The position numbers and the translations under genes were made by a program. A stretch of DNA of 64,000 bases, taken from positions 18,259,608 through 18,323,607 of the forward strand of contig NW_026943821.1 in assembly GCF_035594765.1 (NCBI RefSeq). Direction: 5' to 3'. Below the pieces are notes generated by a model. The model searched no databases and had not been told where the DNA came from. It saw only the letters and a program-made list of their open reading frames with translations. The stretch comes from Anolis carolinensis (lineage: Eukaryota). How positions within the stretch are numbered: the stretch's first letter is position 1; each line of letters opens with the position of its first letter. This document shows positions 9,090 through 26,050 of the stretch, one piece after another.

Positions 9090-9257
9090 AGGAAGGAAGA
9101 GGCGGCGGAACCTTTCTGCGTGCGCTCCCAGGGGCGGGAGGAACTTCTTGCAAACGGACCGCGGCCGGAAATAAATAAATAAGGGGGGGTGTTTCTGCCT
9201 GAGGCGCGCGCGCAACTTCCGGCCGGGCTTCTTCTTCCTTTCGCCGCCAGCTCCGCC
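9090..9257 (+). promoter_or_regulatory. CpG-rich SF3A3 promoter/5'UTR
   Basis: CpG-rich with a GC box (GGGGCGGGA), ETS-like ACTTCCGG/CCGGAA motifs and a pyrimidine tract before a strong Kozak gccATGg at 9258. Confidence 0.7.
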
Positions 9258-12200
9258 ATGGAGACCATCCTGGAGCAGCAGCGGCGTTACCACGAAGAGC
9301 GGGAGAGATTGATGGACGTCATGGTCAAGGAGATGCTGACACGGAAGACCACGGTTAGTTAGTTATACAGGAGGCATAGGCTAAGGTAAGCATGGGCCAA
9401 CTTGGGCCTTCTCTCCAGGTGTTTTGGACTTCAACTCCCACCATTCCTCACAGCCTCAGGCCCTTTCCTTTTACCCCCCAGCCGCTTAAGCGGCTGGGGG
9501 GTAAAAGGAAGGGGCCTGAGGCTGTGAGGAATGGTGGGAGTTGAAGTCCAAAACACCTGCAGAGAAGGCCCAAGTTGGCCCATGCCTGCCTTACACTATT
9601 CAAAACTAACTGCACCTCGTTGAGGACTTGAAACTTGGGTTCCAACAGGAGGTACTCCCCACTGGCCCTTTCTCCTCTTCCCTCACTCTCACTCTCTTCC
9701 TCTTCTCTGCAGCTTCGGGACCAAATCAACTCGGACCACCGGACCCGAGCTATGCAGGACGTGAGTGGAGGCACCGCCGGGGAGCCTGGGGAGGGAGGAC
9801 ACCGTGGGACCGTGGGACCATCCAGTCCAGCCCCCGTCCCTCTCCTTCCCTCTTCCTTCCTTCTGTGGTCCAAGCCTTCCCGACAGCCTCGGCTCACAAT
9901 CCTCCCGAGAAAGAGGATTAGCACAGCGCAGTTACCTTCCTGCCGAAGCGGTAGCTATTGATCTACTCACATTGGCATGTTTTTGAACAGCTAGTTTGGC
10001 AGAAGCTGGGGCTGACAGCGGGAGCTCACCCCACTCCCTGGATTTGAACCCTCGACCTTTCGGTCAGCACGTTCGGCAGCTCAGCAGTTTAATCCGCTGC
10101 GTTACTGGGGGCTCCTACTCACTGTGATACTTATGCCATATAATAGTTACCCTTGTAAATTGCTTAAATTATTCCTCTTGCAGCTTCCCTAAAATCCACT
10201 TTTGCCTTCCTTTGCAAATGTACAAAAGCCAGAGTGCATGTGTTTACAAACTTTTCAATATTTTTACCCTGTCCATTTGACATATTCTAATACAGTAGAG
10301 TCTCACTAATCCAAGCCTCGCTTATCCAAGCCTCTGGATAATCCAAGCCATTTTTGTAGTCAATGTTTCCAAAATATCGTGATATTTTGGTGCTAAAGTC
10401 GTAAATACAGTAATTACAAGATAACATTACTGCATATTGAACTACTTTTTCTGTCTTTCTCTCCTTCCCTCTTCCTTCCTTCTGTGGTCCAAGCCTTCCC
10501 GACAGCCTCGGCTCACAATCCTCCCGAGAAAGAGGATTAGCACAGCAGGCTTAGAAAAATCCTACTGATTGAAAGGTTGCCAGTTTGAGCCCGGGTCGGG
10601 GTCAGCACCTGCTGTTAGCCCCAGCTCACCTGCCCACCTAGCAGGTTGAAAGCAGAAATTCGAGTAGATAAATAGGTACTGCTTTTAGTGGGGAGGTTTT
10701 TTTTTAATAAAGGCCCCTGGTGGCACAATGTGTTAAAGCGCTGAGCTGCTGAACTTGTGGACCAAAAGGTCCCAGGTTCAAATCCCGGGAGCGGAATGAG
10801 CGCCCGCTGTTAGCCCCTGCTCCTGCCAACCTAGCAGTTCGACAACATGCAAATGTGAGTAGACCAATAGATACCGCTCCATGCAGTCATGCCGGCCACA
10901 TGACCTTGGAGGCGTCTACGGACAACACCGGCTCTTTGGCTTAGAAATTGAGATGAGCAGTTGGAAGGGGCAGGGCTGCTTTGAAGACTAGAACTGGCAC
11001 GGGCTTTAAGATCTACCAGGAAGGCCCTCCTCTTGGTCCCACCTCTGTCTTAAGTGCGCCTGGTGGGACAAGACCTTTTCTGCCAGTTGAACATCCTTTG
11101 TCACTCCCTCAGCTGCTCCTCAGGGGGAGTCATAGTTTTCAAATCTTTCAAATCTTTGGCCATTTTGGTGGTCCTTCTCTGGACGTGGCCCCCTCCCGCT
11201 CCTGATATGGTCTGTAGACATTGTCATTTTTTCTTCCTGGCCTCTACTTGAGTAGATGAACTACTGCAAGCTTAAGGAAGCCAGCAAAACAATTTGCTTG
11301 ACAGCCAAAAAAAAAGACAACCAAAAAAAGCCATTCCTCTCCTTGCCAAAAGGGATATAAATTTTGCCACAGTTTGGAAAAGTTAAAGGCAGAACAGGAA
11401 CTACAGTTCCAAGACAGTAACATTTTCAAGCACTGGCTTTAGAGAATACTACAAATATTTTGAGACCCAGTTTTGGGGGAAAGGTGGGCATCTGCAGCTG
11501 GGCCTCGAGCCCACACAGCCCACTCTTTCGCCCCCCCCTGATGGCAGAGCCTTCCTTCTCTTGCAGCGCTACATGGAGGTGAGCGGCAACCTGCGTGACC
11601 TGTACGACGACAAAGACGGGTGAGAATGGAGGGGTCGACTGGCAGTTCCATGGGTGGGGAAGGGCAGGGGCATTGTGGCCTTTGGGGGAAAGAAGGGGTG
11701 ACTCCTTGGGGTTCCCCACAAATGCTCCCCAAACCTTTGCTGCAGTCAAGCCACCCTTGATGCTCTCCATGGGTACCTGGAAGAAGGGTCCAACAATCTC
11801 TGAATGTGCAGTTGGGCAGGAGAGCCAACACCCTTCTCTTCTCTCTGTCAAGCACACAATCCATTTCATTTCTCCACCTTTTTGTGGCCCCCCAGGCTCC
11901 GGAAGGAGGAGCTTAGCGCCATCTCAGGACCCAACGAGTTTGCCGAATTCTACAACCGCCTCAAGCAGATCAAGGAGTTCCACCGGAAGCATCCCAATGA
12001 GGTGAGGGCCTGCAGGACAGGCAGCTGCTCCCCGTTCTACCAATGGACACCCAATAAAGGCCTGAAACAAAACACCATGCGACACAATTTTTGTTCCTGG
12101 GTTATAAATGTCATTTCCTAATTGGTTCTGTCATAAAAACATGGAAAATGTTTATTAAACTGCAAAAACTTTGTCTATGTGGGAGGGACATTTTGCAGCA

Positions 12201-15200
12201 ACACATTTTACTCTAGTTTTTCAATGAATATCTCATGGAGTCCCAACCAGTTCAACAGAGTTTGTGGCAGCCAGAAAAACCAAGTTGTTTCTGGAGTAGG
12301 ACAACTACTTTCAAAGTAGGAACCACACAGTTAAACAGGAAATAACACTTTCAAACTAGGAACAGAAAAAAAATCAGATTTTATTACATAGTGAAATCAG
12401 AGCCATTTTAATTTATTGGTTACATTTGGGAGTGTTCTCTAAGTGGTTTGGGGCCAAATGTGTGGCGATGTAGCAGCTTTCATGCTTGTGTCAGGGCTCG
12501 TAGGGGTTGGCCAGGAATCTAGGAAACAATGAAAACCTGGCTGCCCCCAGTTGCCCCTCTTTCTTCCAAAGAATACAACAATATTTTGTGCTTTTCTATA
12601 GATCTGTGTGCCAATGTCAGTGGAGTTTGAGGAGTTCCTCAAGGCCCGGGAGAACCCCAGTGAAGAGGCCCAGAGTACGTTTGAGGCCTGAAAGGCTTTG
12701 TAATCACCCCTTGGCTTCCCTCCCTGCCCTGATGCCCATCTCTCTTCTCAAGATAATAATATTATAATGTAATACAATATTATACTAATTTATAACATAA
12801 TATAATATTAATTATATATTATGTATTAAATGTAATATTACTAATAATATTACCATAAAATTATATAGTACAATATAGTAATTTAATTGCTTATATTGTG
12901 CTATGCTAATAATATATTGTATGTACATTTGATTTGTAAGCCACTCTGAGTCCCCTTCGGGGTGAGAAGAGCGGCATATAAATGTAGTAAATAAATAAAT
13001 GAATAAGAGAATCTGGAGTGGATGGGCTGGGGTGCAGCAAAGCCAAGGAAGTGCAGACGGAGTGGAGAGAAAGGGCACTTCCTTCATGGGCAATTTTCCA
13101 GATGCATTTCTTTGTTTTTGGCAGACCTTGTAGAGTTTACTGATGAAGAAGGATATGGCCGCTATTTGGACCTGCATGACTGTTATCTCAAGTACATTAA
13201 CTTGAAGGCCTCGGAGGTGAGATAGATGCCTGCAGTTCCCTGGATGTGGGCAGGGAGCAGGGCATTGCTTGGCTTTTATTCCTTTCTTTCTGGTCCCTAC
13301 ACTGTTCCCCACCCTGAACTAAGAGTCTAGTGCTGTATAGAAAGGCAAATAATTTCTCTCTTGTCAATAATAACAGCGACAATAATAGTAATTATAATAG
13401 TGGTAATAGCGATGAATGATCTGTTTTGCAGAAACTGGACTACATCACGTACCTGTCTACTTTTGACCAGCTCTTTGACATTCCCAAGGAGAGAAAAAAT
13501 GCAGAGTACAGAAGGTGGGTGCAATCAGGCATTTTGGGGAGTGAGAGGAAAGGAAAGGCCTGGGCCTATGGTTTATGTGGCTCCTCTGGTGCTGCCAGGA
13601 GTCTTGCTCGTCTTTCATGATGCTTTCTCTATTGCATAGGCATACAGTCAACATGCTTAGTGTTTTCCCATTACAGGTACTTAGAGATGCTCCTGGAATA
13701 CCTTCAGGATTACACAGACCGGGTGAAGCCGCTGCTAGACCAAAATGAGCTCTTTGGCAAAATCCAGGCAGAGTTTGAAAAGAAATGGGACAATGGCACA
13801 TTCCCTGGATGGCCGGTGAGCAGGGATGGGCAGAGGGGCCTTTTTGGCAACTTGGAACAGAGACCTGGGGCAGACCCTTTTCCAGGCTTGTCCCTGCTGG
13901 GCTGCCCAATTAAGGTGGTTCTGGACCAAAGTGTACTGAGGGCCTTTGGCCAGTAACCTTTGTCTCTTGTGGTCTTTTGGCAGAAAGAGACCAGCAGCGC
14001 CCTCACCCATGCGGGGGCCCACCTGGACCTCTCGGCCTTCTCTTCCTGGGAGGTGGGTTTGCGTCCTTGAGTTTTTTCTTGTCAGAGGAAGGGGCAGGGT
14101 GGTGGTGATGGACCTACAATTATCCTTTCCCTCCATCCCTTGGCTTCTACTGAGTACATGGTTGCCCTGCAGAGGAGGTGCTAAGCACCAGTCTGACTCC
14201 CACTAACTCTGAGCTTTTATGTCTCAGGAACTGGCTTCCCTCGGATTGGATCGGCTGAAGTCTGCCCTGTTGGCTTTGGGTCTGAAGTGTGGGGGGTGAG
14301 TCATGAGCCGGATTCCCATCAGCCCAGTGGAGGGTTTTGGGACAGTTTAGCTGGACTTTAAGGTACAGTCCACCCCAAAGTACAGAGACTTAACTCTGTG
14401 GTCTTGCCTTTTCTTTCCCTCCTGAGCAGTACTTTAGAGGAACGTGCCCAGAGGCTGTTCAGCACCAAGGGAAAGTCCCTAGAGGCCCTTGACTCTTCCC
14501 TCTTTGCCAAGAACCCCAAGACAAAGGGGAGCAAGCGGTGAGTAGGCTCCATGTGCCCAACTTCCCATAATGGCTGTGGTCAGCTGTTTCTGGGCTCTGG
14601 GGGGCAGCCCTGGCATCTTGCCAGAGCAGCGCATCCATCACAGCACTGTTGTCTTTGCAGAGACACAGAGCGCAACAGGGACCTGGCCTTCCTGGAAGCT
14701 CAGATCTATGAATACGTGGAGACCCTCGGGGTGAGTTTTTTTTTTCGTGTCAGGAGCGACTTGAGAAACTGCAAGTCGCTTCTGTTCTGAGAGAATTGGC
14801 CGTCTGCAAGGACGTTGCCCAGGGGACGCCCGGATGTTTTTGATGTTTTTATCATCCTTGTGGGAGGCTTCTCTCATGTCCCCGCATGGAGCTGGAGCTG
14901 ATAGAGGGAGCTCATCCGCGCTCTCCCCGGGTGGGATTTGAACCTGGAAGCTTTCAGATCAGCAACCCAACCTTCAAGTCACAAGGCCCCTCCCTTATCC
15001 TTGCCTTGAGTCTCCTCTGGGTTGAGAAAGGTGGGATATAAATATGGTAAATTCCCTTGGTGCCTAGCCTTGTTTGGGACCTCATGGCCAGGACAGGACT
15101 GCCTTGCCAATGCCCGCACCCTTTGCCCCCTTCTGCAGGAGCAGCGGCAACTGACCCATGAGAACGTCCAGCGCAAACAGGCACGGACCGGGGAGGAGCG

Positions 15201-16824
15201 GGAGGAGGAAGAGGAGGAGCAGATCAGCGAGAGTGAGAGCGAGGATGAAGAGAACGAGATCATCTACAACCCCAAGAACCTGCCCCTGGGATGGGATGGC
15301 AAGGTGAGTCCCCTGCTGGTCACTGGAGGGATTGGGGGGTGGGGATGAGTGGGCCACTTTGGGGGCAGCGCAGGGTCACTCCTTTTCTCTTTTCCTTCTT
15401 GCAGCCCATCCCCTACTGGTTGTACAAGCTCCATGGCCTGAACATCAACTACAACTGTGAGATCTGTGGAAATTACACGTACCGGGGTCCCAAGGCCTTC
15501 CAGCGGCACTTTGCAGTGAGTGTCAGGCGAGAGAGGCATTGTGGTGGGCTGGGAAGAGGCGCAAGGCGAGCCAGAAGAGTCAGGGCGGTTTGGTTTACAA
15601 GGAGGCAAACCAGTGTGGGATGGGGAAGATGTGTCTCATGAGCTGGGGTTCTTTCTGTATTGTCCTTGACAAGGAGTGTGGGCCTGGATTGTGGGCTTGG
15701 CTGCCATGCAGAAGAGAGGAATATGAGGCCACTCTTCCTTGTGCCTCTTCATCAGGCCCTCTGTGGCTACCTGGAAACAACTTGGATGGGCCCTTCCTTC
15801 CTGACCCTCTTTTTGATGCCTTTCTCTGCTCTGCAGGAGTGGCGTCATGCTCATGGGATGCGGTGCTTGGGCATCCCGAACACGGCTCACTTTGCCAATG
15901 TCACACAGATTGAGGATGCTGTCTCCCGTAAGTGCAAGTTTCCCCCTCTTCCAGCTGCTTGGGGGTCCTGGAGCAGTTGCTGCCACCACTGCCATAAGCC
16001 TGTATTCAATTGCAGCAGCTGTGAGAGATTCTCTGAGGGCAACTGCTGTGTCTCTGGTTGCTCTTGACCCCCAGGTGCCATTTGGGGGGTAGTTTGGGTC
16101 AGGCAGCTAGACAATACAGGAACCCTGATTGGGATTGGGGGGCACACAGCCCCTCTTCTGCTGGTGTTGGAGGCAGCTGTGTTTCTGTCAGGGGGCAGTG
16201 GCCCTGACCCTCTTCTTGTGTCTCTTGCAGTCTGGTCAAAGCTGAAACAGCAGAAGGCTTCAGAGCGGTGGCAGCCAGACACAGAGGTCAGTTGGGGCTG
16301 TGGGGCAGGGATGGTGATTGCGAGTTGGTGGAATGTAGGAGTGTCTGCGCTCCTGTATCCCAAAGTCCCCTGTGGTCATCACAGCTGGGAGAATCTGATG
16401 AACTCTCTGTTAATAGGGGTGCCTATCAGTCTCTTGTCATGGCATGAAGGTCCTCCGATGGGAGGAAGGATGAGGACCTGTGCCTGACAGTCTGAAGGAG
16501 TAGCTGAAGCATGGCTCTGAGGACAAGCCTTGGGGTCCCTCGGAAGCAAAGGGATGGCTATTGGGTGGCCTTTCAGGAGGCTCGCTGGGGGCATCTGATT
16601 GCTCTTGGGCTCTGTAAGTCTTGGTGTGTTCCAGTCCTGCTGCCCTATCTAGGCCTCTTGCTCACACCCTCAATGACCTCCATGCTTGGACACCCAATAG
16701 ATGTATCCTTTCTTCCTTTCTCCTCTCACTCCTTTTTTCTCCTCAGGAGGAATATGAAGATTCCAGCGGGAATGTGGTCAACAAGAAGACCTACGAAGAC
16801 CTGAAGCGCCAAGGCCTGCTGTGA
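9258..16824 (+). CDS. SF3A3: Splicing factor 3A subunit 3 (SF3a60/Prp9), 17 exons, 501 aa
   Basis: Exons 9258-9353, 9713-9760, 11567-11619, 11896-12001, 12602-12674, 13125-13216, 13432-13514, 13677-13815, 13984-14052, 14228-14295, 14430-14537, 14661-14730, 15139-15303, 15405-15515, 15837-15927, 16231-16286, 16747-16824; 1506 nt. [14 protein letters not shown]...[12 protein letters not shown]...[19 protein letters not shown]...[12 protein letters not shown]. Confidence 0.98.
9387..9588. mobile_element. Fold-back (palindromic) hAT-type MITE; other copies 20083-20276, 30943-31076, 41864-42061, 61832-62033, partial ~57414-57505
   Basis: ~100-bp arms centred on GCCGCTT|AAGCGGC, with CAGGC(A/C)TGGG-type termini. 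Confidence 0.88.
9925..10455 (+). repeat. 531-bp direct copy of 6799-7329, flanked by an 88-bp duplication (9840-9927 and 10459-10546)
   Basis: Direct comparison by eye: same length and no differences seen, including unique sequence between the two TE fragments. Confidence 0.92.
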
Positions 16825-16972: not shown

Positions 16973-18851
16973 CAACTGTTTTAAAGGCAGAAAGTAAGTG
17001 TCTTCAGCATGATTTGTGTTTCATCAGGCAGTGGCTGGTGCAGTTCAGGACCTTTTCTGCAGGTCTGACATATGCACAGATGAGTGTGTCAGAGTTTTAT
17101 ATTATTTAGGTCATTTCTTATGTGAAAATGGATAAGTGTTTGTAAGAATCATGTCCTATCCATGTATGACCAGCAGCAATCAAGACACCTGCTAAAGACT
17201 GAGGGCTATTAATAGAGACTGAGTAAATCTTGTGAATGTGAAGATGATGCTGGTGACGATGATGGTGTTGCTGTTGGAAAGCTGTTGAAGTGGAGCTGAA
17301 GAAAGCTTGAAGATAACATTTTGTTTCGCCAGTTGAAAGCTGCTGATAAAAGCCAAGGACTGTTATGTTTGTATATAGTTTTATATAAATCTTTCTTTAC
17401 TAAAAGACAGTTTGTTTTGGGGTTTTCTCCTTGGATGAAGGGTGCAACTTCCGCAGAAGGGGTTGAGAGTTTGGAACCCCAGTTTGATAGCTGCGACAGA
17501 GTGAAACACAGGGCATTGGTGGATTGGGGGGTAGGGGAGAAAGGGAGAGACTCGCTGCCCAGAGAACCAGAGAGTATGCTCCTCCTCTGGCTCCTCACCT
17601 GCCCTCAGCTGTATCTTCTAGTTGGTGCCGCCTCTTCCTGGGCGGGAGGCATCCTCTGTGCCAGTGCTGAAGGCTGGTGTTGCTCAGGCATCCAGGGCTA
17701 CCTGCAGGTGAGAAGCAAGCCAGGTAAGTGCCCAGGGAGTCAAGGTCTTTTGAAGAACAGGCTGAGGAAATGGGGAGAGGGAGAGGGTGGTCAAGTCAGG
17801 TTGCAGTGGGAAACCTCCGTCATGAGCCATGAACAACCCAAACGGCTCAGCCCCAGCCCTCTCTGCCTCCTCCTTAGTTGGAGGGTGACTGACTTTGGAT
17901 GTGAAGATGAGCCACAAAGAACCTCCAGGTTTGAACTATTTACGAGAAGAATGTTTGGAGAAAGTGCTCCCTGTGTTTAGCCTTCACTGAATGCACCCTC
18001 CTATTCTTTACCCCCTCCCTTCCTTTCACTCAGGGGTGTGTGTATATTCTGTGCTTGTATGTATTTGAATCCAGTCCTCAGGTTTGATACTGACTTGGAG
18101 CAGTGAATGCCCTTGAAGGAGTTGCCTCTGGAAGAGTCAGTGGTTTTCTGGGCATCTCTTTTCAGCGTATGACTTGCCTTGTTTTTCCCTGTATCTCAAA
18201 ATTGGTGGCTGAAGCAGGGGAAGGGCAAATGCTGGGTGGGAGGACCCCTTACCCTCCCTCAAAGCTGCAGAGGGCTTTGTTGGTCCTGAGTTGTCAAGAG
18301 GCAGGAAGGAGGCTGATCCAGTGCTTTCCCTGAAGTCTCTGCCAAATGCGCTGTTGCTGGGCCAACACTGGAGTCCCTGAGGGAGCTGCTCTGGGCCACT
18401 AACTTGTCTCTTTCCAGGCTCCATGGCAGCCACTAGTCCCATGGGGTCTTGTGAAGGATCCAGGGATTTGTTGGCAGCCTTCCTGAACTGGTCCATCTGT
18501 CCGTCCATCTGCCTGTCTTTGCTGGAGCCTCTCTGCTCAACGTCTCCGGGGATGGGAAGCAGCAGCCGTGGCCTTGCTGTGAAAGCACTTTCGTGGCCTG
18601 AAATGCAACCTTACCTTGGCAGGCTTATAAATAACTGTCTCTGCTTGTTAGATTTTATAGCACGGCAGTAATTAGCGGCCCTGTTTTGTGCTTCCCTTTT
18701 TAATGGTTTCGTAATTTAACCGTTTTCTACAATTGAGGCAGCCATCCAAGAACAAAAACACAGATGGCCTGCTTACAAATCTTTTAAGAAGTAACGATAG
18801 TAAGCGGATGTAAGCTGTTAAGTATCCTATTAATGAGAAGATCATAAAGTA

Positions 18852-19735
18852 CCGTATATACTTGAGTATAAGCCGACCCGAATATAAGCCGAGACACTAA
18901 TTTTATCACAAAAAAACTGGGAAAACATTGACTCCAGTATAAGCTGAGATACCAATAAAATTATATCAATTGAGACATCAGTAATTGAAATGTTTTTGAA
19001 TCATTACATCAAACTGTAATTTAAGATATGACTGTTCAACTGTGATTAAATCATTATTTTCATCTTCTTCAATGTAAATGTGCTTATGTATCCTTTTAAT
19101 AATAGAGTGAAATAATAAATGTAATAATAATAAATGCAGTGAAATAATAAATGTAATAATAGAGTAAAATAATGTATTAATAAAAATAAAAATAGAGTAA
19201 AATAAATGTAAAAGTAACAAAAATAATAGAGTAAAATAATAAATGTTATAATTATAATTATGGAGCCTCCGGTGGCCTAGGGGATAAAAGCCTAGTGACT
19301 TGAAGGTTGGGTTGCTGACCTGAAGGCTACCAGGTTTGAATTCCACCCAGGAAGAGTGCAGATGAGCTCCCTCTATCAGCTCCAGCTCTATGCGGGGACA
19401 TGAGAGAAGTCTCCCACAAGGATGGTAAAACATCAAAACATCCGGGCGTCCCCTGGGCAACGTCCTTGCAGACGGCCAATTCTCTCACTCCAGAAGCAAC
19501 TCCGGTTGCTCCTGACACGAAAAAAATTATAATTATAATTAATAGAGTAAAATAATAAATGTAACAATACCAATAATGATAGAGAAAAATAATAAATATA
19601 CCATATATACTTGAGTATAAGCCGACCTGAATATAAGCCCACCAGGACCCTCACCCGAGTATAAGCCAAGGAGGTTTTTTTTTTTCAGTCCTAAGAAAGG
19701 GCTGAAAAACTAGGCTTATACTCGCGTATATACAG
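18852..19735. mobile_element. TA-flanked Tc1/mariner-type non-autonomous element with a nested SINE
   Basis: TIR CCGTATATACTTGAGTATAAGCC ... GGCTTATACTCGCGTATATACAG, TA on both sides, extra internal TIR copy at ~19601. Confidence 0.8.
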
Positions 19736-20082
19736 TAATTGCAAGAAAGCTCTGGTAAAAGCAGATTGAGCAAGCGTCTTCCAAGGAGGGTTTCCCAAAG
19801 AAGAGAGTCTTAAGCCTTCAAAGGAGAAATGCAGTTGTGCTTTGTGTGCCTTCAAAGCTTGGCCTATAACTAAGGAAGGCCCATCTGCAGGAGAGGCAGA
19901 ACAGTATATGGGGAGACACTCTGAGAAGGATGGGAGACTAACAACAGTATTGCTAGCCATCTGGCATACGATACTCGTGCATCCCGGCAAGCCAAGGGCA
20001 AGTCAAGTCTGAGACAGTGACAGATGGATTCAGCACCTTGGAAAGCTCCCTCACAGCCAAAACCTGGTGGGAGAGGCTATAA

Positions 20083-20337
20083 CAGGTATGGGCAAACTTT
20101 GGCCTTCCGGGTGTTTTGGACTTCAACTCCCACCATTCCTAACAGCCTCAGGCCCTTTTCTTTTCCCCCGCAGCCGCTTAAGCGGCTGCGGGGGAAAAGA
20201 AAAGGGCCTGAGGCTGTTAGGAATGGTGGGAGTTGAAGTCCAAAACACCCGGAAGGCCAAAGTTTACCCTTGCCTGATCTAGGGCTTGAAAATATTCCAA
20301 TTTCAGTTCCTAAAGGGCTGAAGTTTGCACATGCCTG
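20083..20337. mobile_element. Composite hAT element with 8-bp TSD GGCTATAA
   Basis: GGCTATAA at 20075-20082 and 20338-20345; left TIR at 20083, right TIR-like ends at 20276 and 20337. Confidence 0.8.
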
Positions 20338-20340
20338 GGC

Positions 20341-20346
20341 TATAAA
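20341..20346 (+). promoter_or_regulatory. Candidate TATA box of the Cys-rich GPI-protein gene
   Basis: TATAAA 53 nt upstream of ATG 20394; overlaps the right TSD of a hAT element. Confidence 0.55.
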
Positions 20347-20393
20347 GTGCTCGCTTTGTGTGTTTGCCCCCTTCCTTATAGTTCTGCTTCACG

Positions 20394-23300
20394 ATGGTGC
20401 GGCCAATGTCTTGGATCCTTCCAGCTCAAGGTAAGAGACACTGTTCTGAACATATCGGAGAGGGAGGGCAAGAAAGACCATCCCTTTGGGGTTCAGGTCT
20501 AGGCTTTCCATCCTCTTCCTTCCTTCTCCAGGCCTTCTCCTCTTGTTCTGCCTTGCGCTGCAGTCGGACTCCTGGAACCCCAATGCGTCTGCGGGTGAGG
20601 AAAGGAACGAGGTGCACGAGGGCAAGGGAAGGCCTCTTCCTTCTGCCCCCAACTCAACGCCTTCTCTTTCAGAGCCCTTCACCAACATCACCCCACTTCT
20701 CTCCAGCAGCTCTGGGTTGTCAGCAGAGCTTGTGATGCCTGTAAGGAATACTAACCCTGACCAGAGTGGGGCAGGGAGGGGGCTCTGCCAAAGGGGCAGG
20801 GCTTTGGGTCAGGGTCCAGTGGCTTGGTAGTTCAGCCACTCTTGGTCTGAGACCAGATGGAAGCCCAGCTCCTCCTGCTCTCCTTGCAGCTGACCTGCCA
20901 GGCTTTCCAGTGTTTTGGCGAGAGATGCTACCAGGAGGCGGCAGTGGTGGTCCATGGAAACAGCTCATGGGAGTCCTGCCACAATGCCTCCCACTGCGAG
21001 GTAAGGGTCTGGGCCTTTGCCTTCCTGGGTGGGGGTAGTTTTTGCAGGGGGGGGGGGTCTCCTTAGATCCCTGAGCTACATCCCTGGAGTCAGAGGTGGG
21101 CCATGAAGGGACACATACTGCTATTCACAAAACATATTCACAAAAAAAATCACAAAATAATCATGAAACCATTCACAAAACATTCACATCTATATATATA
21201 AATGAGTGATGGCATCACAGCGACCAACAAAACAACAAAACTACAGGCCCCCCAATCTCGAAATTTGACAACACAATCCATCATCCATGCCTCTAGGTTG
21301 ATACAACAAAAAGAAAAGAAAAATAAAGTCCTAATTAGAGGGAAAGGAATAATTGTTTTTATCCAATTGCTGCCAGTTAGAACTCTGCCCACATGGTCTC
21401 CTAGCAACCAACTCAGCCCAGGGGGCAGGCAGACTTAGGCCTCTCTTAGGCCTCTTCCACAGATTATCTAATTTGCACTGGATTATATGGCAGTGTAGAC
21501 TCAAGGCCCTTCCACACAGCTATATAACCCATTTATAATGGACTTAATGTCAGGGGAAAACCTTGACCCTTTACCTTAACTACCACCAATTCCTCAATAG
21601 TTTATTTCCCATACCACCATACTTCGCCACAGCAACGCGTGGCCTGGCACAGCTAGTAAAATATATACACAAAAACATTTGCAAAACATATTCACAAAAA
21701 TATTCGCATAAAATATATACACAAAAATATTCGCATAAAATATATACACAAAAGTATTCGCATAAAATATATACACAAAAATATATACACAAAAATATTC
21801 GCATAAAATATAAACACAAAAATATATACACAAAAACATTTGCAAAACATATTCACAAAAATAATCATGAACCTATTCACAAAATGATCACAAAAAAATT
21901 ATTTATTTATTTTTATTAACAGCATTTATATTCCGCCCTTCTCACCCCGAAGGGGACTCAGGGCGGATCACATTGCACACATAAAGGCAAACATTCAATG
22001 CCATGACATAGAACAGAGACAGAGACAAGATGCAGGCACCGGGCTGGCCTCGAATTCATGACCTCTTGGTCAGAGTGATTTGTTGATTTGTTGCAGCTGG
22101 CTTGCTTTCCAGCCTGCGCCACAGCCCAGTCCTTTACAAAATTATATACACAATTGTATACACAAAAATGTTCACAAAAATATTTGCATAAAATATATAC
22201 ACAAAAGATTTGGAAATAATCATGAACCTCTTCACAAATATAATCACAAAAATAACAAAATATTTGCAAAATTATATACACAAAAACATTCACAAAAACA
22301 TTTGCAAAACATATTCACAAAAATAATCATGAAACTATTCACAAAAATATTCGCATAAAATATATACACAAAAATATTTGCAAAACATACTCACAAAAAT
22401 AATCATGTACCTATTCACAAAAAATAATCACAAAAATATTCACTAAAATCACAAAATATTTACAAAATTATATACTTAAAAATATTCACAAGAATAATCA
22501 TGAAACTATTCTCAAAAATATTCGCATAAAATATATACACAAAAATATTTGCTAAACATACTCGCAAAAATAATCACGAACCTATTCACCAAAAATAATC
22601 ACAAAAATATTCACTAAAATCACAAAATATTTACACATTTATATACACAAAAATATTCACAAGAATAATCATGAAACTATTCTCAAAAATATTCGCATAA
22701 AATATATACACAAAAAGATTTGTAAAACATACTCACAAAAATAATTGCAAACCTATTCACAAAAATATTCACAAAAATATTCACAAAATATTCACAAAAT
22801 TAAATACACAAACATATTCACAAAAACAATCATGAAACTATTCACAAAAATACATAAAATATATACACAAAAATATTTGCAAAACATATTCACGAACTCA
22901 CACACAAGTGGCCCTCCTTAAAATGGTCCTCTGCTAATGCTTCTCTTCCCTGCCCCACACCAGTTGATCCGTGTGAACAGCACCAGTTACGCAGCCGGGT
23001 GCAGCAGCGAGTGTGGGAACGGCAGCGCCGCAGTGATGTGTGGGGCCAACAGCCGTGTGAGCCTGGAGCCCTGCACTATGGAGTGTTGTGGTGCCCCAAA
23101 CTGTCTACGCCTCAATGCCACGGCATACGGTACTATAGTCGCCCAATGGGCTCTCCCATTCCATGCACCTGTGGCTCCTTGCACCCATCTCCTGATGCCC
23201 CCAAGGGCACCCACATCTCTCCAAGACTTCGACCAGCCTCTTTCTCTCTCTCTTCCAGGTGACCCATCGCCCATCACCACTACTACAGTTCTCACAACCG

Positions 23301-24093
23301 CCACCACTACCGCTACCACCACCACCACTACAGCAGCCCCCCAAAATGTAGGTGTTTCTTCCCTGGTTCTACAATGGCCTCAATGGCTACCACAGTGGGA
23401 ACACTGGCATCACTGGCATTGCCACCAATGGCTCCTGTATCCCTTCCTTTGGCTTCCTAGGGCAAAGTGTGCGGCCACTTCACCTGCCATGGAGAAGGGT
23501 GCTACCTAAGCCAGAGATCCTCCACGAGCTGCCATGTCGGCTATGATTTCTGTGAGGTAATGACACATTTGCCACCGACCCATCCCTTGACCCCGGCTAG
23601 GATTGTCAGAATGGCCTGCTCCAAACGCATCCTCCCCCTTCCCTTGTGGGCCTCAGGAGGGTGAAAAGCAGGGAAGCAAAGCCCACGGACTTACGAAATT
23701 CATAAGTCAACAGGTGATTTTGAAGGTACATACACACAACTTTAATATCACACATGGCAATATTCAAAAAACACTAGGAGAACATATCGTTCTCCCAAAG
23801 CTGGCTGTCAGATGAGGCCACTCCTCAACTAAACAACTTCAGGGACAGTAAAAAAATGGAACACGAACTCAGAAACTCAGCTCTGTGGCTGGGATGATAT
23901 CAGGGAGGCTTTCTATCTCAATACATTAAATAGGATTTTATTGAATAGATTCATGGCAAAGTTGGGAACCCCCGGTAGCGCAGTGGGTTAAACCCTTGTG
24001 CCAGCAGGACTACTGACTTGAAGGTTGGGTTGCTGACCTGAAGGTTGCCAGTTCGAATCCAACCCAGGGAGAGCGTGGATGAGCTCCTTCTAT

Positions 24094-24132
<39 letters not shown>

Positions 24133-25208
24133 TTTGCAGTATTTATATTCCGCTCTTCTCACCTCGAAGGGGACTCAGGGTGGATCACATTACACATATA
24201 AGGCAACCATTCGATGCCATAACCATAGAACAGAGACAGAGACAGACGCAGACACGGGTGGGCCTCGAACTCAGAGTGATTTGTTGCAGCTGGCTGCTAA
24301 CCAGCCTGCGCCACAGCCTGGCCTATCAGCTCCAGCTCCATGTGGGGACACGAGAGAAGCCTCCCACAAGGATAGTAAAAACATCAAAACATCCGGGCGT
24401 TCCCTGGGCAACATCCTTGCAGACAGCCAATTCTCTCACACCATGTCACTCCTGACATGAAAACAAAATGGCGAAGTGGTATTATAGTGTTTTATATATG
24501 TATTTTGAACGGCATGGTTCTAAATACTTTAAAAGCAATAAATCATGTTCGATCTGGACAGCTAAGCAGGGTCAGTCCTGGTTAACACTTGGATGGGAAA
24601 CTACCAACAAGGGCCAGGTGCTGTAGGCTATATTTCAGAGGAGGGAAATGGCAAAACTCTTGACTATTATTTCCCTAAAAAAACACCTATAAAATTCATG
24701 GGGGTCACTCTAAGTCAACAGGTAACTTGAAGGCACACACAGGAACTGAACCTGTTTTGAAAAACAATGCAATACCTTGGACAGATCCTTTGGGGTTCAG
24801 GCTAAAAATGAAACCCAGTGACCCCATTCTGCCCTGCCTTGTAAACGGGGACTGACTCCTTCCCTCCATACTGGCCTCCCTTGAACCAAGCCCTGGCTCT
24901 CCCTCTTTTGGGGCACAATGGGACCCCCAACATCTCTTTCGTCCTTCCAGATGAAGAAATCCGGGTCCACCTTTGTGGCCGGCTGCAGCAGAGTTTGCCC
25001 AGGGACGGGCACAGCCTGTGCGATGGGATCCAAGGGCCCTTGCTACCAAGAGTGCTGCTCAGCCAAACCCAGGGCCAGCTGCCTGCGACTGGATGGCAAG
25101 GTCCACCTCAATGGGGCAGGGGTTTTGGGGGCAGCAGCCCTGCCACCACTCCTGGCCCTCCTCAGCCTGACCTTTGCCTTCCCTCCCTTCCTCCTTGGGA
25201 ACAACTGA
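20394..25208 (+). CDS. Uncharacterised secreted/GPI-anchored glycoprotein with two tandem 12-Cys Ly6/uPAR(three-finger)-like domains and a Thr-rich linker, 8 exons, 295 aa
   Basis: Exons 20394-20430, 20532-20594, 20673-20740, 20890-21000, 22964-23129, 23259-23347, 23461-23556, 24951-25208; all GT-AG, phase-compatible, 888 nt with no internal stop. Hydrophobic N-terminus (WILPAQGLLLLFCLAL), duplicated Cys pattern, 7 N-X-S/T sequons, C-terminal NGAG followed by a hydrophobic tail. ATTAAA at 25390. Confidence 0.85.
21123..22900. repeat. A-rich, G-poor minisatellite (27-bp unit ~ACACAAAAATATTCGCATAAAATATAT plus higher-order variants)
   Basis: Visible tandem periodicity; interrupted by a Helitron (21189-21656) and a SINE (~21899-22129). 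Confidence 0.9.
21189..21656 (+). mobile_element. Non-autonomous Helitron
   Basis: 5' TC(TATATATATAAA), subterminal hairpin GCCACAGCAACGCGTGGC at 21626-21643, 3' CTAG; inserted between A and T with no TSD. Confidence 0.85.
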
Positions 25209-25629
25209 GACAGTACTAGTCAAGCACTGGGAAAATGTCCACAAAGCAACCACACCCCCACCCCAGTCAATGAGTATTGGGCCAGCCTTCAGTTGCTTCC
25301 ACTTGCTCCAGTATAACTCATTGAAATGTTTGGGGGTAGGTTTGATTTTAAGTTGCAACTGAATGTACTGAGCAATAGATATAATACACATTAAAATGCT
25401 AAAATATTAGTCACTTATGAACTCCTCTATAAGTCCTTTATTAAACTATGGAATCTGTTAGCAATCTGATATGTTTGAAAGGAGTGGTAGCTTCTTTTGC
25501 TGTAAATAGAAATACATCCACATACCAATTATTGTGCTTATTGTATATATCAGGGTCCCCAAACTAAGGCCCTCCAAGGTCATTTACCTGGCCCCTGGCC
25601 TAAACTTTATACTTAGGGTTGACCTAAGT

Positions 25630-26050
25630 CTACCTGGTCTTTGGAGGTCTCTTTGCTTACCTATGGCCTTATGAGATCGTCTAGATGGTCTTTGAAGATC
25701 TCTTTGCTTAGCTACGGCCTTATGAGACCATCTAGAAGGCTTTTGGAGGTCACTTTCCTTACCTATGGTCATATGAGACCGTCTAGATGGCCTTTGAGGG
25801 TCCCTTAACTTACCTATGGTTTTATGAGATTGTCTAGATGGCCTTTGGGGGACCCCTTTCCTTACTTATGGTCTTATGAAAACATCTGGATGATCTTTGA
25901 GGGTCCCTTTTCTTATCTATGGTCTTCTGATGGCCTGATGAGATCATCTAGATGGCTTTTGAGGGTCCCTTTCCTTACCGATGATCTAATGAGACCATCT
26001 AGATGATCTTTGGAGTTCTCTTTGCTTACCTATGGTCTTATGAGATCATC
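25630..26050. repeat. ~42-bp minisatellite (cttatgagaccatctagatggcctttgagggtccc...ttacctatggt)
   Basis: About ten degenerate tandem units following a hAT-like terminus at 25551. Confidence 0.8.

Follow-up and report, generated by a model that had tools for sequence, protein, structure and literature searches.

What is the cysteine-rich gene that lies between SF3A3 and INPP5B in the lizard Anolis carolinensis, and how has it stayed without a name? The question arises from a stretch of 64,000 nucleotides (assembly GCF_035594765.1, contig NW_026943821.1, positions 18,259,608 to 18,323,607), called the window here, to whose first letter all coordinates refer. The gene very probably forms a branch of its own, divergent and unnamed, within the Ly6/uPAR (LU) fold family, and appears to be an ancient, single-copy vertebrate gene for a cell-surface glycoprotein of the glycosylphosphatidylinositol (GPI) type with two cysteine-rich domains, D1 and D2. 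Catalogues of the Ly6/uPAR proteins take the genes of human and mouse, together with Pfam profiles, as their basis (PMC4839075, PMC13719153). The family described here escapes both, and an ancient vertebrate member therefore seems to have been missed. What is new is this ancient unnamed vertebrate family with its variant of the three-finger or LU domain; what was known already is the automatic annotation LOC103280538.

The gene has eight coding exons on the plus strand, joining into 888 nt (295 amino acids and a stop codon) with no internal stop, in a window that holds no N bases. The seven introns all run GT..AG, with pyrimidines at 14-17 of the 17 nt preceding each acceptor, and their phases from 5' to 3' are 1,1,0,0,1,0,0; the exons, splice sites, phases and open frame of the preliminary description of this locus all hold. 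Exon 1 (20394-20430) carries the ATG and the start of what, judging from the sequence, is probably a signal peptide, and ends in phase 1, with a short counterpart from lamprey to bat; exon 2 (20532-20594) supplies the hydrophobic core of this peptide and its end. Exon 3 (20673-20740) encodes a short Ser/Thr-rich N-terminal stalk that is far longer and mucin-like in birds and fish. D1 is divided between exon 4 (20890-21000; five cysteines, two N-glycosylation sequons, phase 0/0) and exon 5 (22964-23129; seven cysteines, three sequons, C-terminal CC-x4-C-L-x-L-N). Exon 6 (23259-23347) is a Thr-rich linker, probably O-glycosylated, with a predicted local distance difference test score (pLDDT) below 50 in the model. 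D2 follows in exon 7 (23461-23556; five cysteines, phase 0/0) and in the 5' part of exon 8 (24951-25097), which has seven cysteines, no sequons and the conserved K, AGCS, QECC and C-L-x-L-D-G. The 3' part of exon 8 (25098-25208) encodes a GPI-type signal, with a hydrophobic stretch and without a charged cytoplasmic tail; the candidate omega site is an Asn (N-G-A) at 25110-25112, 31 residues before the C-terminus, and the TGA stands at 25206-25208. Each domain thus counts 12 cysteines, as had been proposed, with five in its first exon and seven in its second. Exons 5 and 8 are homologous (score 79, equalled in none of 5000 shuffles), and the homology of exons 4 and 7 is weak (12 of 5000 shuffles). 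A chance chain of exons was ruled out, as orthologues carry the same exon series.

The locus had been called unrecognised; in the sense of unannotated this is wrong. A search with the natural open frame of exon 5 found LOC103280538 of A. carolinensis at 100% identity, together with orthologues in Anolis sagrei and Sceloporus. Since the eight exon peptides all occur, one after the other, in the 295-aa RefSeq protein XP_062818579.1 (LOC103280538 isoform X2), the gene is predicted but uncharacterized in public annotation, where it is labelled "uncharacterized" only and has no domain assigned. Its orthologues carry misleading names that stem from their Ser/Thr parts, such as mucin-5AC-like, endochitinase A, DAN4 and pfl2. 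No paper naming the gene was found by its identifiers or its flanking genes, in literature mostly outside subscription journals, and LOC103280538 corresponds to no named gene that has already been characterised. RefSeq isoform X1 reads in frame through intron 2 (78 nt); both this intron (20595-20672) and intron 5 (23130-23258, 129 nt) are in frame and free of stops.

The hallmarks of an LU domain are a three-finger beta fold of 60-90 residues, ten plesiotypic cysteines ending in CC-xn-C, and the disulfide pairing 1-5, 2-3, 4-6, 7-8 and 9-10. Further marks are an Asn right after the tenth cysteine and two exons per domain, generally with phase-1 intron flanks (PMC6600238), and in the LYPD6-type domain, which has 12 cysteines, loops I and III hold the extra bonds (PMC7582953). 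In the present family, D2 is predicted to take up a three-finger fold and the first-to-last cysteine span of each domain is 73-82 residues. The ten LU cysteines can be mapped in order, with a loop-III pair as in LYPD6, and the spacing departs from the consensus. Judging from this order and the predicted fold, each domain most likely contains the five LU disulfides and a sixth in loop III, as in LYPD6, LYPD6B and Lynx2. Each domain is likewise encoded by two exons, whose flanks are mostly phase 0 instead of phase 1. The residue after the last cysteine is Leu in 52 of 59 D2 and 46 of 49 D1 domains, otherwise Met, Phe or Thr, and never Asn, and no profile of the Pfam clan uPAR_Ly6_toxin matches. 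Neither cysteine of the 7-8 bond is missing from D1, which has 12 cysteines in all jawed vertebrates scored. A domain that is predicted to have the LU structure yet departs from the family in the terminal Asn, the intron phase and the profile, and from the human multi-LU proteins in the 7-8 cysteines of D1, is therefore best placed in a divergent three-finger branch, within no named LU subfamily.

For the fold, an AlphaFold model of the Sceloporus D2 (pLDDT 91, predicted template-modelling score (pTM) 0.81, almost all beta) was compared with 48,161 PDB chains by VIA. The window itself was searched per exon or per natural open frame, and full-length searches and folds used orthologues, with Sceloporus as the lead and a bat. 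Among the 42 VIA matches, the first 39 are each to an LU domain, a snake three-finger toxin or the ectodomain of a TGF-beta receptor. The best, Lynx1 and GPIHBP1, reach Z 7.3 with a root-mean-square deviation (rmsd) of 3.0-3.5 over 67-73 aligned residues, against Z 2.9 for the best unrelated chain, and the D1 model matches Lynx1 at Z 7.2. The Atlas gives template-modelling (TM) scores of 0.59-0.67 to LU clusters, its feature scores of 0.80-0.89 being taken as leads only. Overall, the fold scores are moderate yet consistent and point to a three-finger fold for D1 and D2, in agreement with the three-finger-like domains first proposed. The model of both domains together has pTM 0.52 and a low-confidence linker, so that no fixed packing of the domains is predicted.

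Given this fold, it is useful to ask which known three-finger group stands nearest. LYPD6, LYPD6B and LYPD1 (Lynx2) share the six-disulfide cysteine order with the loop-III pair and the GPI context predicted for the anole family (fold Z 6.0-6.5). They have a single LU domain, however, where the anole family has two without Asn after the last cysteine; moreover, the anole family has C1-x4-C2 against x2 and C-x3-CC against x2, and the identity is 14-17% over the aligned part. Lynx1 and GPIHBP1, both accessory binders on the cell surface, resemble the family in the three-finger fold and in the GPI anchor, which is predicted in the anole family. Theirs is a single 10-cysteine domain with 14-18% identity, whereas the anole family is without an acidic N-terminal region of the GPIHBP1 type. 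TGF-beta receptors have an LU-like ectodomain followed by a transmembrane helix and a kinase; the anole protein ends 31 residues past the candidate omega site with no kinase, and the fold Z is just 3.5-5.5. Snake three-finger toxins are secreted single domains without an anchor, confined to advanced snakes, and were rejected as an identity for a protein with two domains and a hydrophobic anchor signal that is found across vertebrates. Reptile phospholipase A2 inhibitor gamma (PLI-gamma, PINLYP), with which the gene had been compared, is a secreted plasma protein whose two three-finger domains are adjacent. Here it is only a fold relative (Atlas TM 0.63-0.64): neither PLA2_inh nor UPAR_LY6 of Pfam matches, and the anole family extends back to lamprey; orthology was rejected. 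Finally, C4.4A/LYPD3, Haldisin/LYPD5 and TEX101 of the 19q13 cluster, and uPAR, are like the anole family in having two exons per domain and in the signal peptide, tandem three-finger domains and GPI signal that are predicted for it. The first domain of the human multi-LU proteins (uPAR, C4.4A, Haldisin, TEX101, CD177) is without the 7-8 disulfide (PMC6600238). By contrast, the anole family keeps all cysteines in both domains and differs further in the Thr linker between them, the phase 0 introns, the SF3A3-INPP5B locus and the lack of a UPAR_LY6 match in Pfam.

How old is the family? A search with exon 8 gave 35 clusters, 33 of them with the family motifs; two matches, repetitive cysteine-rich sequences, were dropped as unrelated. 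Named matches and a profile search together place members in lampreys, horn shark, skates, rays, bichir, paddlefish, sturgeon, gar and teleosts, and further in coelacanth, lungfish, frogs, salamanders, turtles, gharial, birds, lizards, snakes, platypus, opossum and bats. From sharks to bats, D1 and D2 have 12 cysteines each almost without exception, and lamprey D1 has 11. Introns within the domains and at their borders follow an identical pattern from skate to bat, with phase 0 before and inside each domain and phase 1 only after D1; the pattern is nearly the same in lamprey, where the 5' flank of D1 is phase 1. In a quick tree of 90 columns, used solely for this split, a single branch (SH-like approximate likelihood-ratio test 99) separates D1 from D2, with lamprey included, and the tandem duplication therefore probably predates the lamprey split. 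No paralogues were seen in a search that was not exhaustive. Amphibian D2 has 13 cysteines, with a second CC near the end, and the thirteenth could be free for dimer formation. Two chicken protein models stop after D1 and the linker, without D2 or tail, which could be an error of the models or a real truncation; in quail, guineafowl and prairie chicken D1 and D2 are both present.

SF3A3 at about 9255-16824 and INPP5B from about 28459 were both placed in the window by tblastx of the Pfam-labelled Sceloporus locus, which bears out the position first given for the gene. The order SF3A3-gene-INPP5B is found in the anole window, two other lizards, two bats, the mole and the false killer whale, and in Xenopus and sardine the gene lies directly upstream of INPP5B. 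INPP5B adjoins the gene wherever any neighbour is visible; within 10 kb of the skate, horn shark and lamprey loci, no neighbour genes were seen.

The ratio of nonsynonymous to synonymous substitution rates (dN/dS), obtained exon-wise by the Nei-Gojobori method over the four domain exons, is 0.24 between the two anoles (95% interval 0.14-0.37), 0.29-0.35 between the anoles and Sceloporus, 0.41 between two bats (0.23-0.74) and 0.43-0.44 between the bats and the mole. Every four-exon interval lies below 1. The gene is thus under purifying selection in lizards, bats and mole, with a dN/dS of 0.24-0.44, an estimate that the preliminary description had asked for.

What such a protein might do can be approached from its layout. 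By inspection of the signals, the order is probably signal peptide, variable Ser/Thr stalk, D1, Thr-rich linker, D2 and GPI signal, which supports the architecture of two cysteine-rich domains with a GPI-type tail that had been put forward. A small-residue omega-like motif is present in 51 of 59 orthologues and is followed by a hydrophobic stretch with no charged tail; the tail after LDG has a median of 37 residues, and the best 12-residue hydropathy is 2.3. The two domains differ markedly in their predicted glycosylation. D1 averages 4.5 N-glycosylation sequons and is never without one, and D2 averages 0.46 and has none in 66% of cases. D2 also holds the residues K36, G44, Q66, E67, A71, L80, D81 and G82, kept in at least 88% of the 59 orthologues. 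The GPI signal would tether the protein at the cell surface with D2 proximal to the membrane, where D2, mostly unglycosylated and with conserved non-cysteine residues, may bind a partner such as a receptor, a channel or a captured secreted protein. D1 and the mucin segments could then form a heavily glycosylated outer spacer or shield, with the two domains arranged as beads on a string and not as the cup of uPAR, in a mode of action that might be likened to that of Lynx1, LYPD6 or GPIHBP1. It may thus act as an accessory subunit, with D2 as the part that attaches to a conserved partner, secreted or in the membrane, and with D1 and the Ser/Thr parts as a glycosylated spacer, a reading that we favour tentatively and at slightly less than an even chance. 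The data show the gene model, its conservation, the synteny, the purifying selection and the predicted fold; disulfide pairing, GPI anchoring, glycosylation and partner binding are what we infer.

The same layout lends itself to other explanations. With four to five sequons on average in D1, and a Ser/Thr-rich stalk and linker whose widely varying lengths have given orthologues their mucin-like names, the protein could belong to an epithelial barrier or glycocalyx, as a GPI-anchored, heavily glycosylated LU coat of mucosa or skin, or a form shed from it, that binds microbes or matrix and in which the bulk of glycan does most of the work. LYPD8 is reported to be a GPI-anchored colonic protein that keeps the microbiota from the epithelium (PMC5725809), and two epithelial GPI proteins, C4.4A and Haldisin, have two LU domains each (PMC6600238). 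However, most of the stalk and the Thr linker is gone in bats and mole, where both domains are still under selection, no lineage expansion was seen, and the conserved surface residues of D2 would suit a constant partner in the host more than one in microbes; a barrier role is accordingly unlikely. Fertilization involves several GPI-anchored LU proteins (PMC13719153), the fold matches include TEX101 (Z 6.6) and retention in placentals is patchy, as might be expected of an adhesion protein for gamete or cell recognition like Bouncer/SPACA4 or TEX101; its loss from most placentals would then have followed reproductive or developmental change. Such a role seems quite improbable for a gene whose dN/dS is clearly below 1 with no rapid divergence, and retention in bats and mole and not in whales follows no nameable reproductive trait.

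Two further possibilities concern the structure itself. Tandem three-finger domains, with uPAR, C4.4A, CD177 and PLI-gamma clusters among the fold matches, could suggest a ligand trap of the uPAR or PLI-gamma kind, in which D1 and D2 pack into one cavity for a protease or phospholipase. The Thr linker of about 25-75 residues between the domains argues against this, as do the 7-8 bond cysteines that D1 retains and that are dropped in the first domain of the human multi-LU proteins (PMC6600238); two-domain superpositions on C4.4A, TEX101 and CD177 give rmsd above 9, and pTM is 0.52, which makes the trap decidedly improbable. It is also conceivable that an independent small disulfide-rich beta fold merely resembles LU by convergence, for no Pfam or PDB sequence matches, Z stays below 8, Asn never follows the last cysteine and the intron phases are 0/0 against 1/1. 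The LYPD6-like order of 12 cysteines with a G-C motif at the sixth and a terminal CC-xn-C, the two exons per domain, the GPI context and the fact that every good structural match falls in one fold family render convergence very improbable.

Membership in the LU fold family and the proposed accessory role must themselves be held against several observations that weigh the other way. Foldseek gave no match at E <= 0.001 (best 0.085), though the same families rank first. All VIA Z scores are below 8, a range in which, as the tool warns, a match can reflect a common arrangement. The exons, 21 orthologues and a 108-domain alignment gave no Pfam match, LU included, the best being Toxin_TOLIP at E 2.9 in 3 of 108 domains; the exons, orthologues and the same alignment also found no match among PDB sequence profiles. 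A common fold is, in any case, no proof of function. In lizards, dN/dS is lower in D1 (0.14-0.28) than in D2 with the GPI tail (0.33-0.41), and therefore D2 is not singled out as the binding domain, with the caveat that the tail inflates the D2 figure. As to transcripts, there were no RNA-type runs among those listed, and reads from four runs were aligned to 22900-25600, a span chosen to avoid the repeat-bearing intron 4. The resulting contigs pass through the introns unspliced and look like DNA, with no GT-AG joints among the contigs listed, so that these four runs do not bear on splicing.

The gene had been thought non-mammalian or lost from mammals. The former is wrong, as bats and mole carry intact 24-cysteine orthologues in the SF3A3-INPP5B locus, and opossum and platypus have intact proteins. 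The latter stands for part of the placentals only. A bat protein query found 13 proteins, from bats, mole, opossum, toothed whales and hippopotamus, with two full-length proteins without a species name and one fragment; no primate, rodent, carnivore or ruminant orthologue is named among these 13 matches, two of which have no species name. As this query went as far as opossum (48% identity), any annotated orthologue from primates, rodents or carnivores would have been expected among the matches. No 1p34 gene stands in the Ly6/uPAR lists published for human and mouse (PMC4839075), and the absence from human and mouse is drawn from these lists and the bat-query search. The false killer whale copy is broken: its first D1 exon carries two indels of one base each, its first D2 exon lacks one base, AT replaces the donor of the intron that follows the linker exon, and cysteines are lost. 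By the sequence record, the gene is kept in monotremes, marsupials and some laurasiatherians and was probably lost, on repeated occasions, in many placentals. All seven exons of the false killer whale copy still align to bat exons, and the orca, dolphin and hippopotamus models look degraded.

Several implications follow for the understanding of the fold and of its history. The three-finger fold appears to tolerate the loss of its "invariable" terminal Asn and of the phase-1 flanks, and it can take a two-domain form with all disulfides kept. Apparently single-copy, present in Xenopus and teleosts and broken or absent in most placentals, the gene is a candidate for marking a function that disappeared as placentals evolved. 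It is possible, if doubtful, that a separate and undescribed three-finger branch, duplicated before the lamprey split, stayed single copy for about 500 million years as an accessory subunit of a conserved receptor or channel and was repeatedly lost in placentals. If true, the placental loss would point to a vertebrate cell type, or a function in signalling, with which most placentals have dispensed.

At the 5' end of the gene, the TATAAA at 20341 that had been taken as a candidate promoter element was rejected as such. A. sagrei has it too, but Sceloporus reads CGTAAA, and it lies about 40 nt 5' of a site that resembles a splice acceptor and stands ahead of the ATG in the orthologues examined; in lizards, bats, frog, sardine and skate, a pyrimidine tract with AG occurs within about 10-50 nt 5' of the ATG. 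Further upstream, a block at about 17615-17730 is 85% identical to Sceloporus and ends in a CAG|GTAAGT donor (17723/17724) that is invariant in three lizards, and an older RefSeq model joined 17707 to 20382. For these reasons a ninth, non-coding first exon probably exists on the plus strand, at 17615-17723 with an undefined 5' end, the donor at 17724 and an alternative donor at 17708, and the TATAAA therefore probably sits in an intron. Between 20372 and 20393, A. carolinensis is without about 30 nt, including the CAG acceptor, that are found before the ATG in A. sagrei and Sceloporus, and a TAG at 20379-20381 replaces this segment. About 110 nt 5' of the ATG lies a palindrome (20077-20282) of two 103-nt arms, 95% complementary and without a spacer, which looks like an insertion of the miniature inverted-repeat transposable element type within the probable first intron.

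Intron 4 (21001-22963) spans 1963 nt in A. carolinensis, whereas its counterparts in A. sagrei and Sceloporus measure 193-195 nt; the surplus consists of an AT-rich tandem repeat (27-bp and 171-bp units) and repeat-like fragments. Downstream of the coding region, the ATTAAA noted earlier is present twice on the plus strand, at 25390 and 25440 (25390-25445), as a polyadenylation-like signal, with ATTAAA or AATAAA similarly spaced in A. sagrei and Sceloporus. Just 3' of these signals, a 51-bp minisatellite of eight copies occupies the region 25628-26045 and is followed by a fragment resembling the reverse transcriptase of a long interspersed nuclear element.

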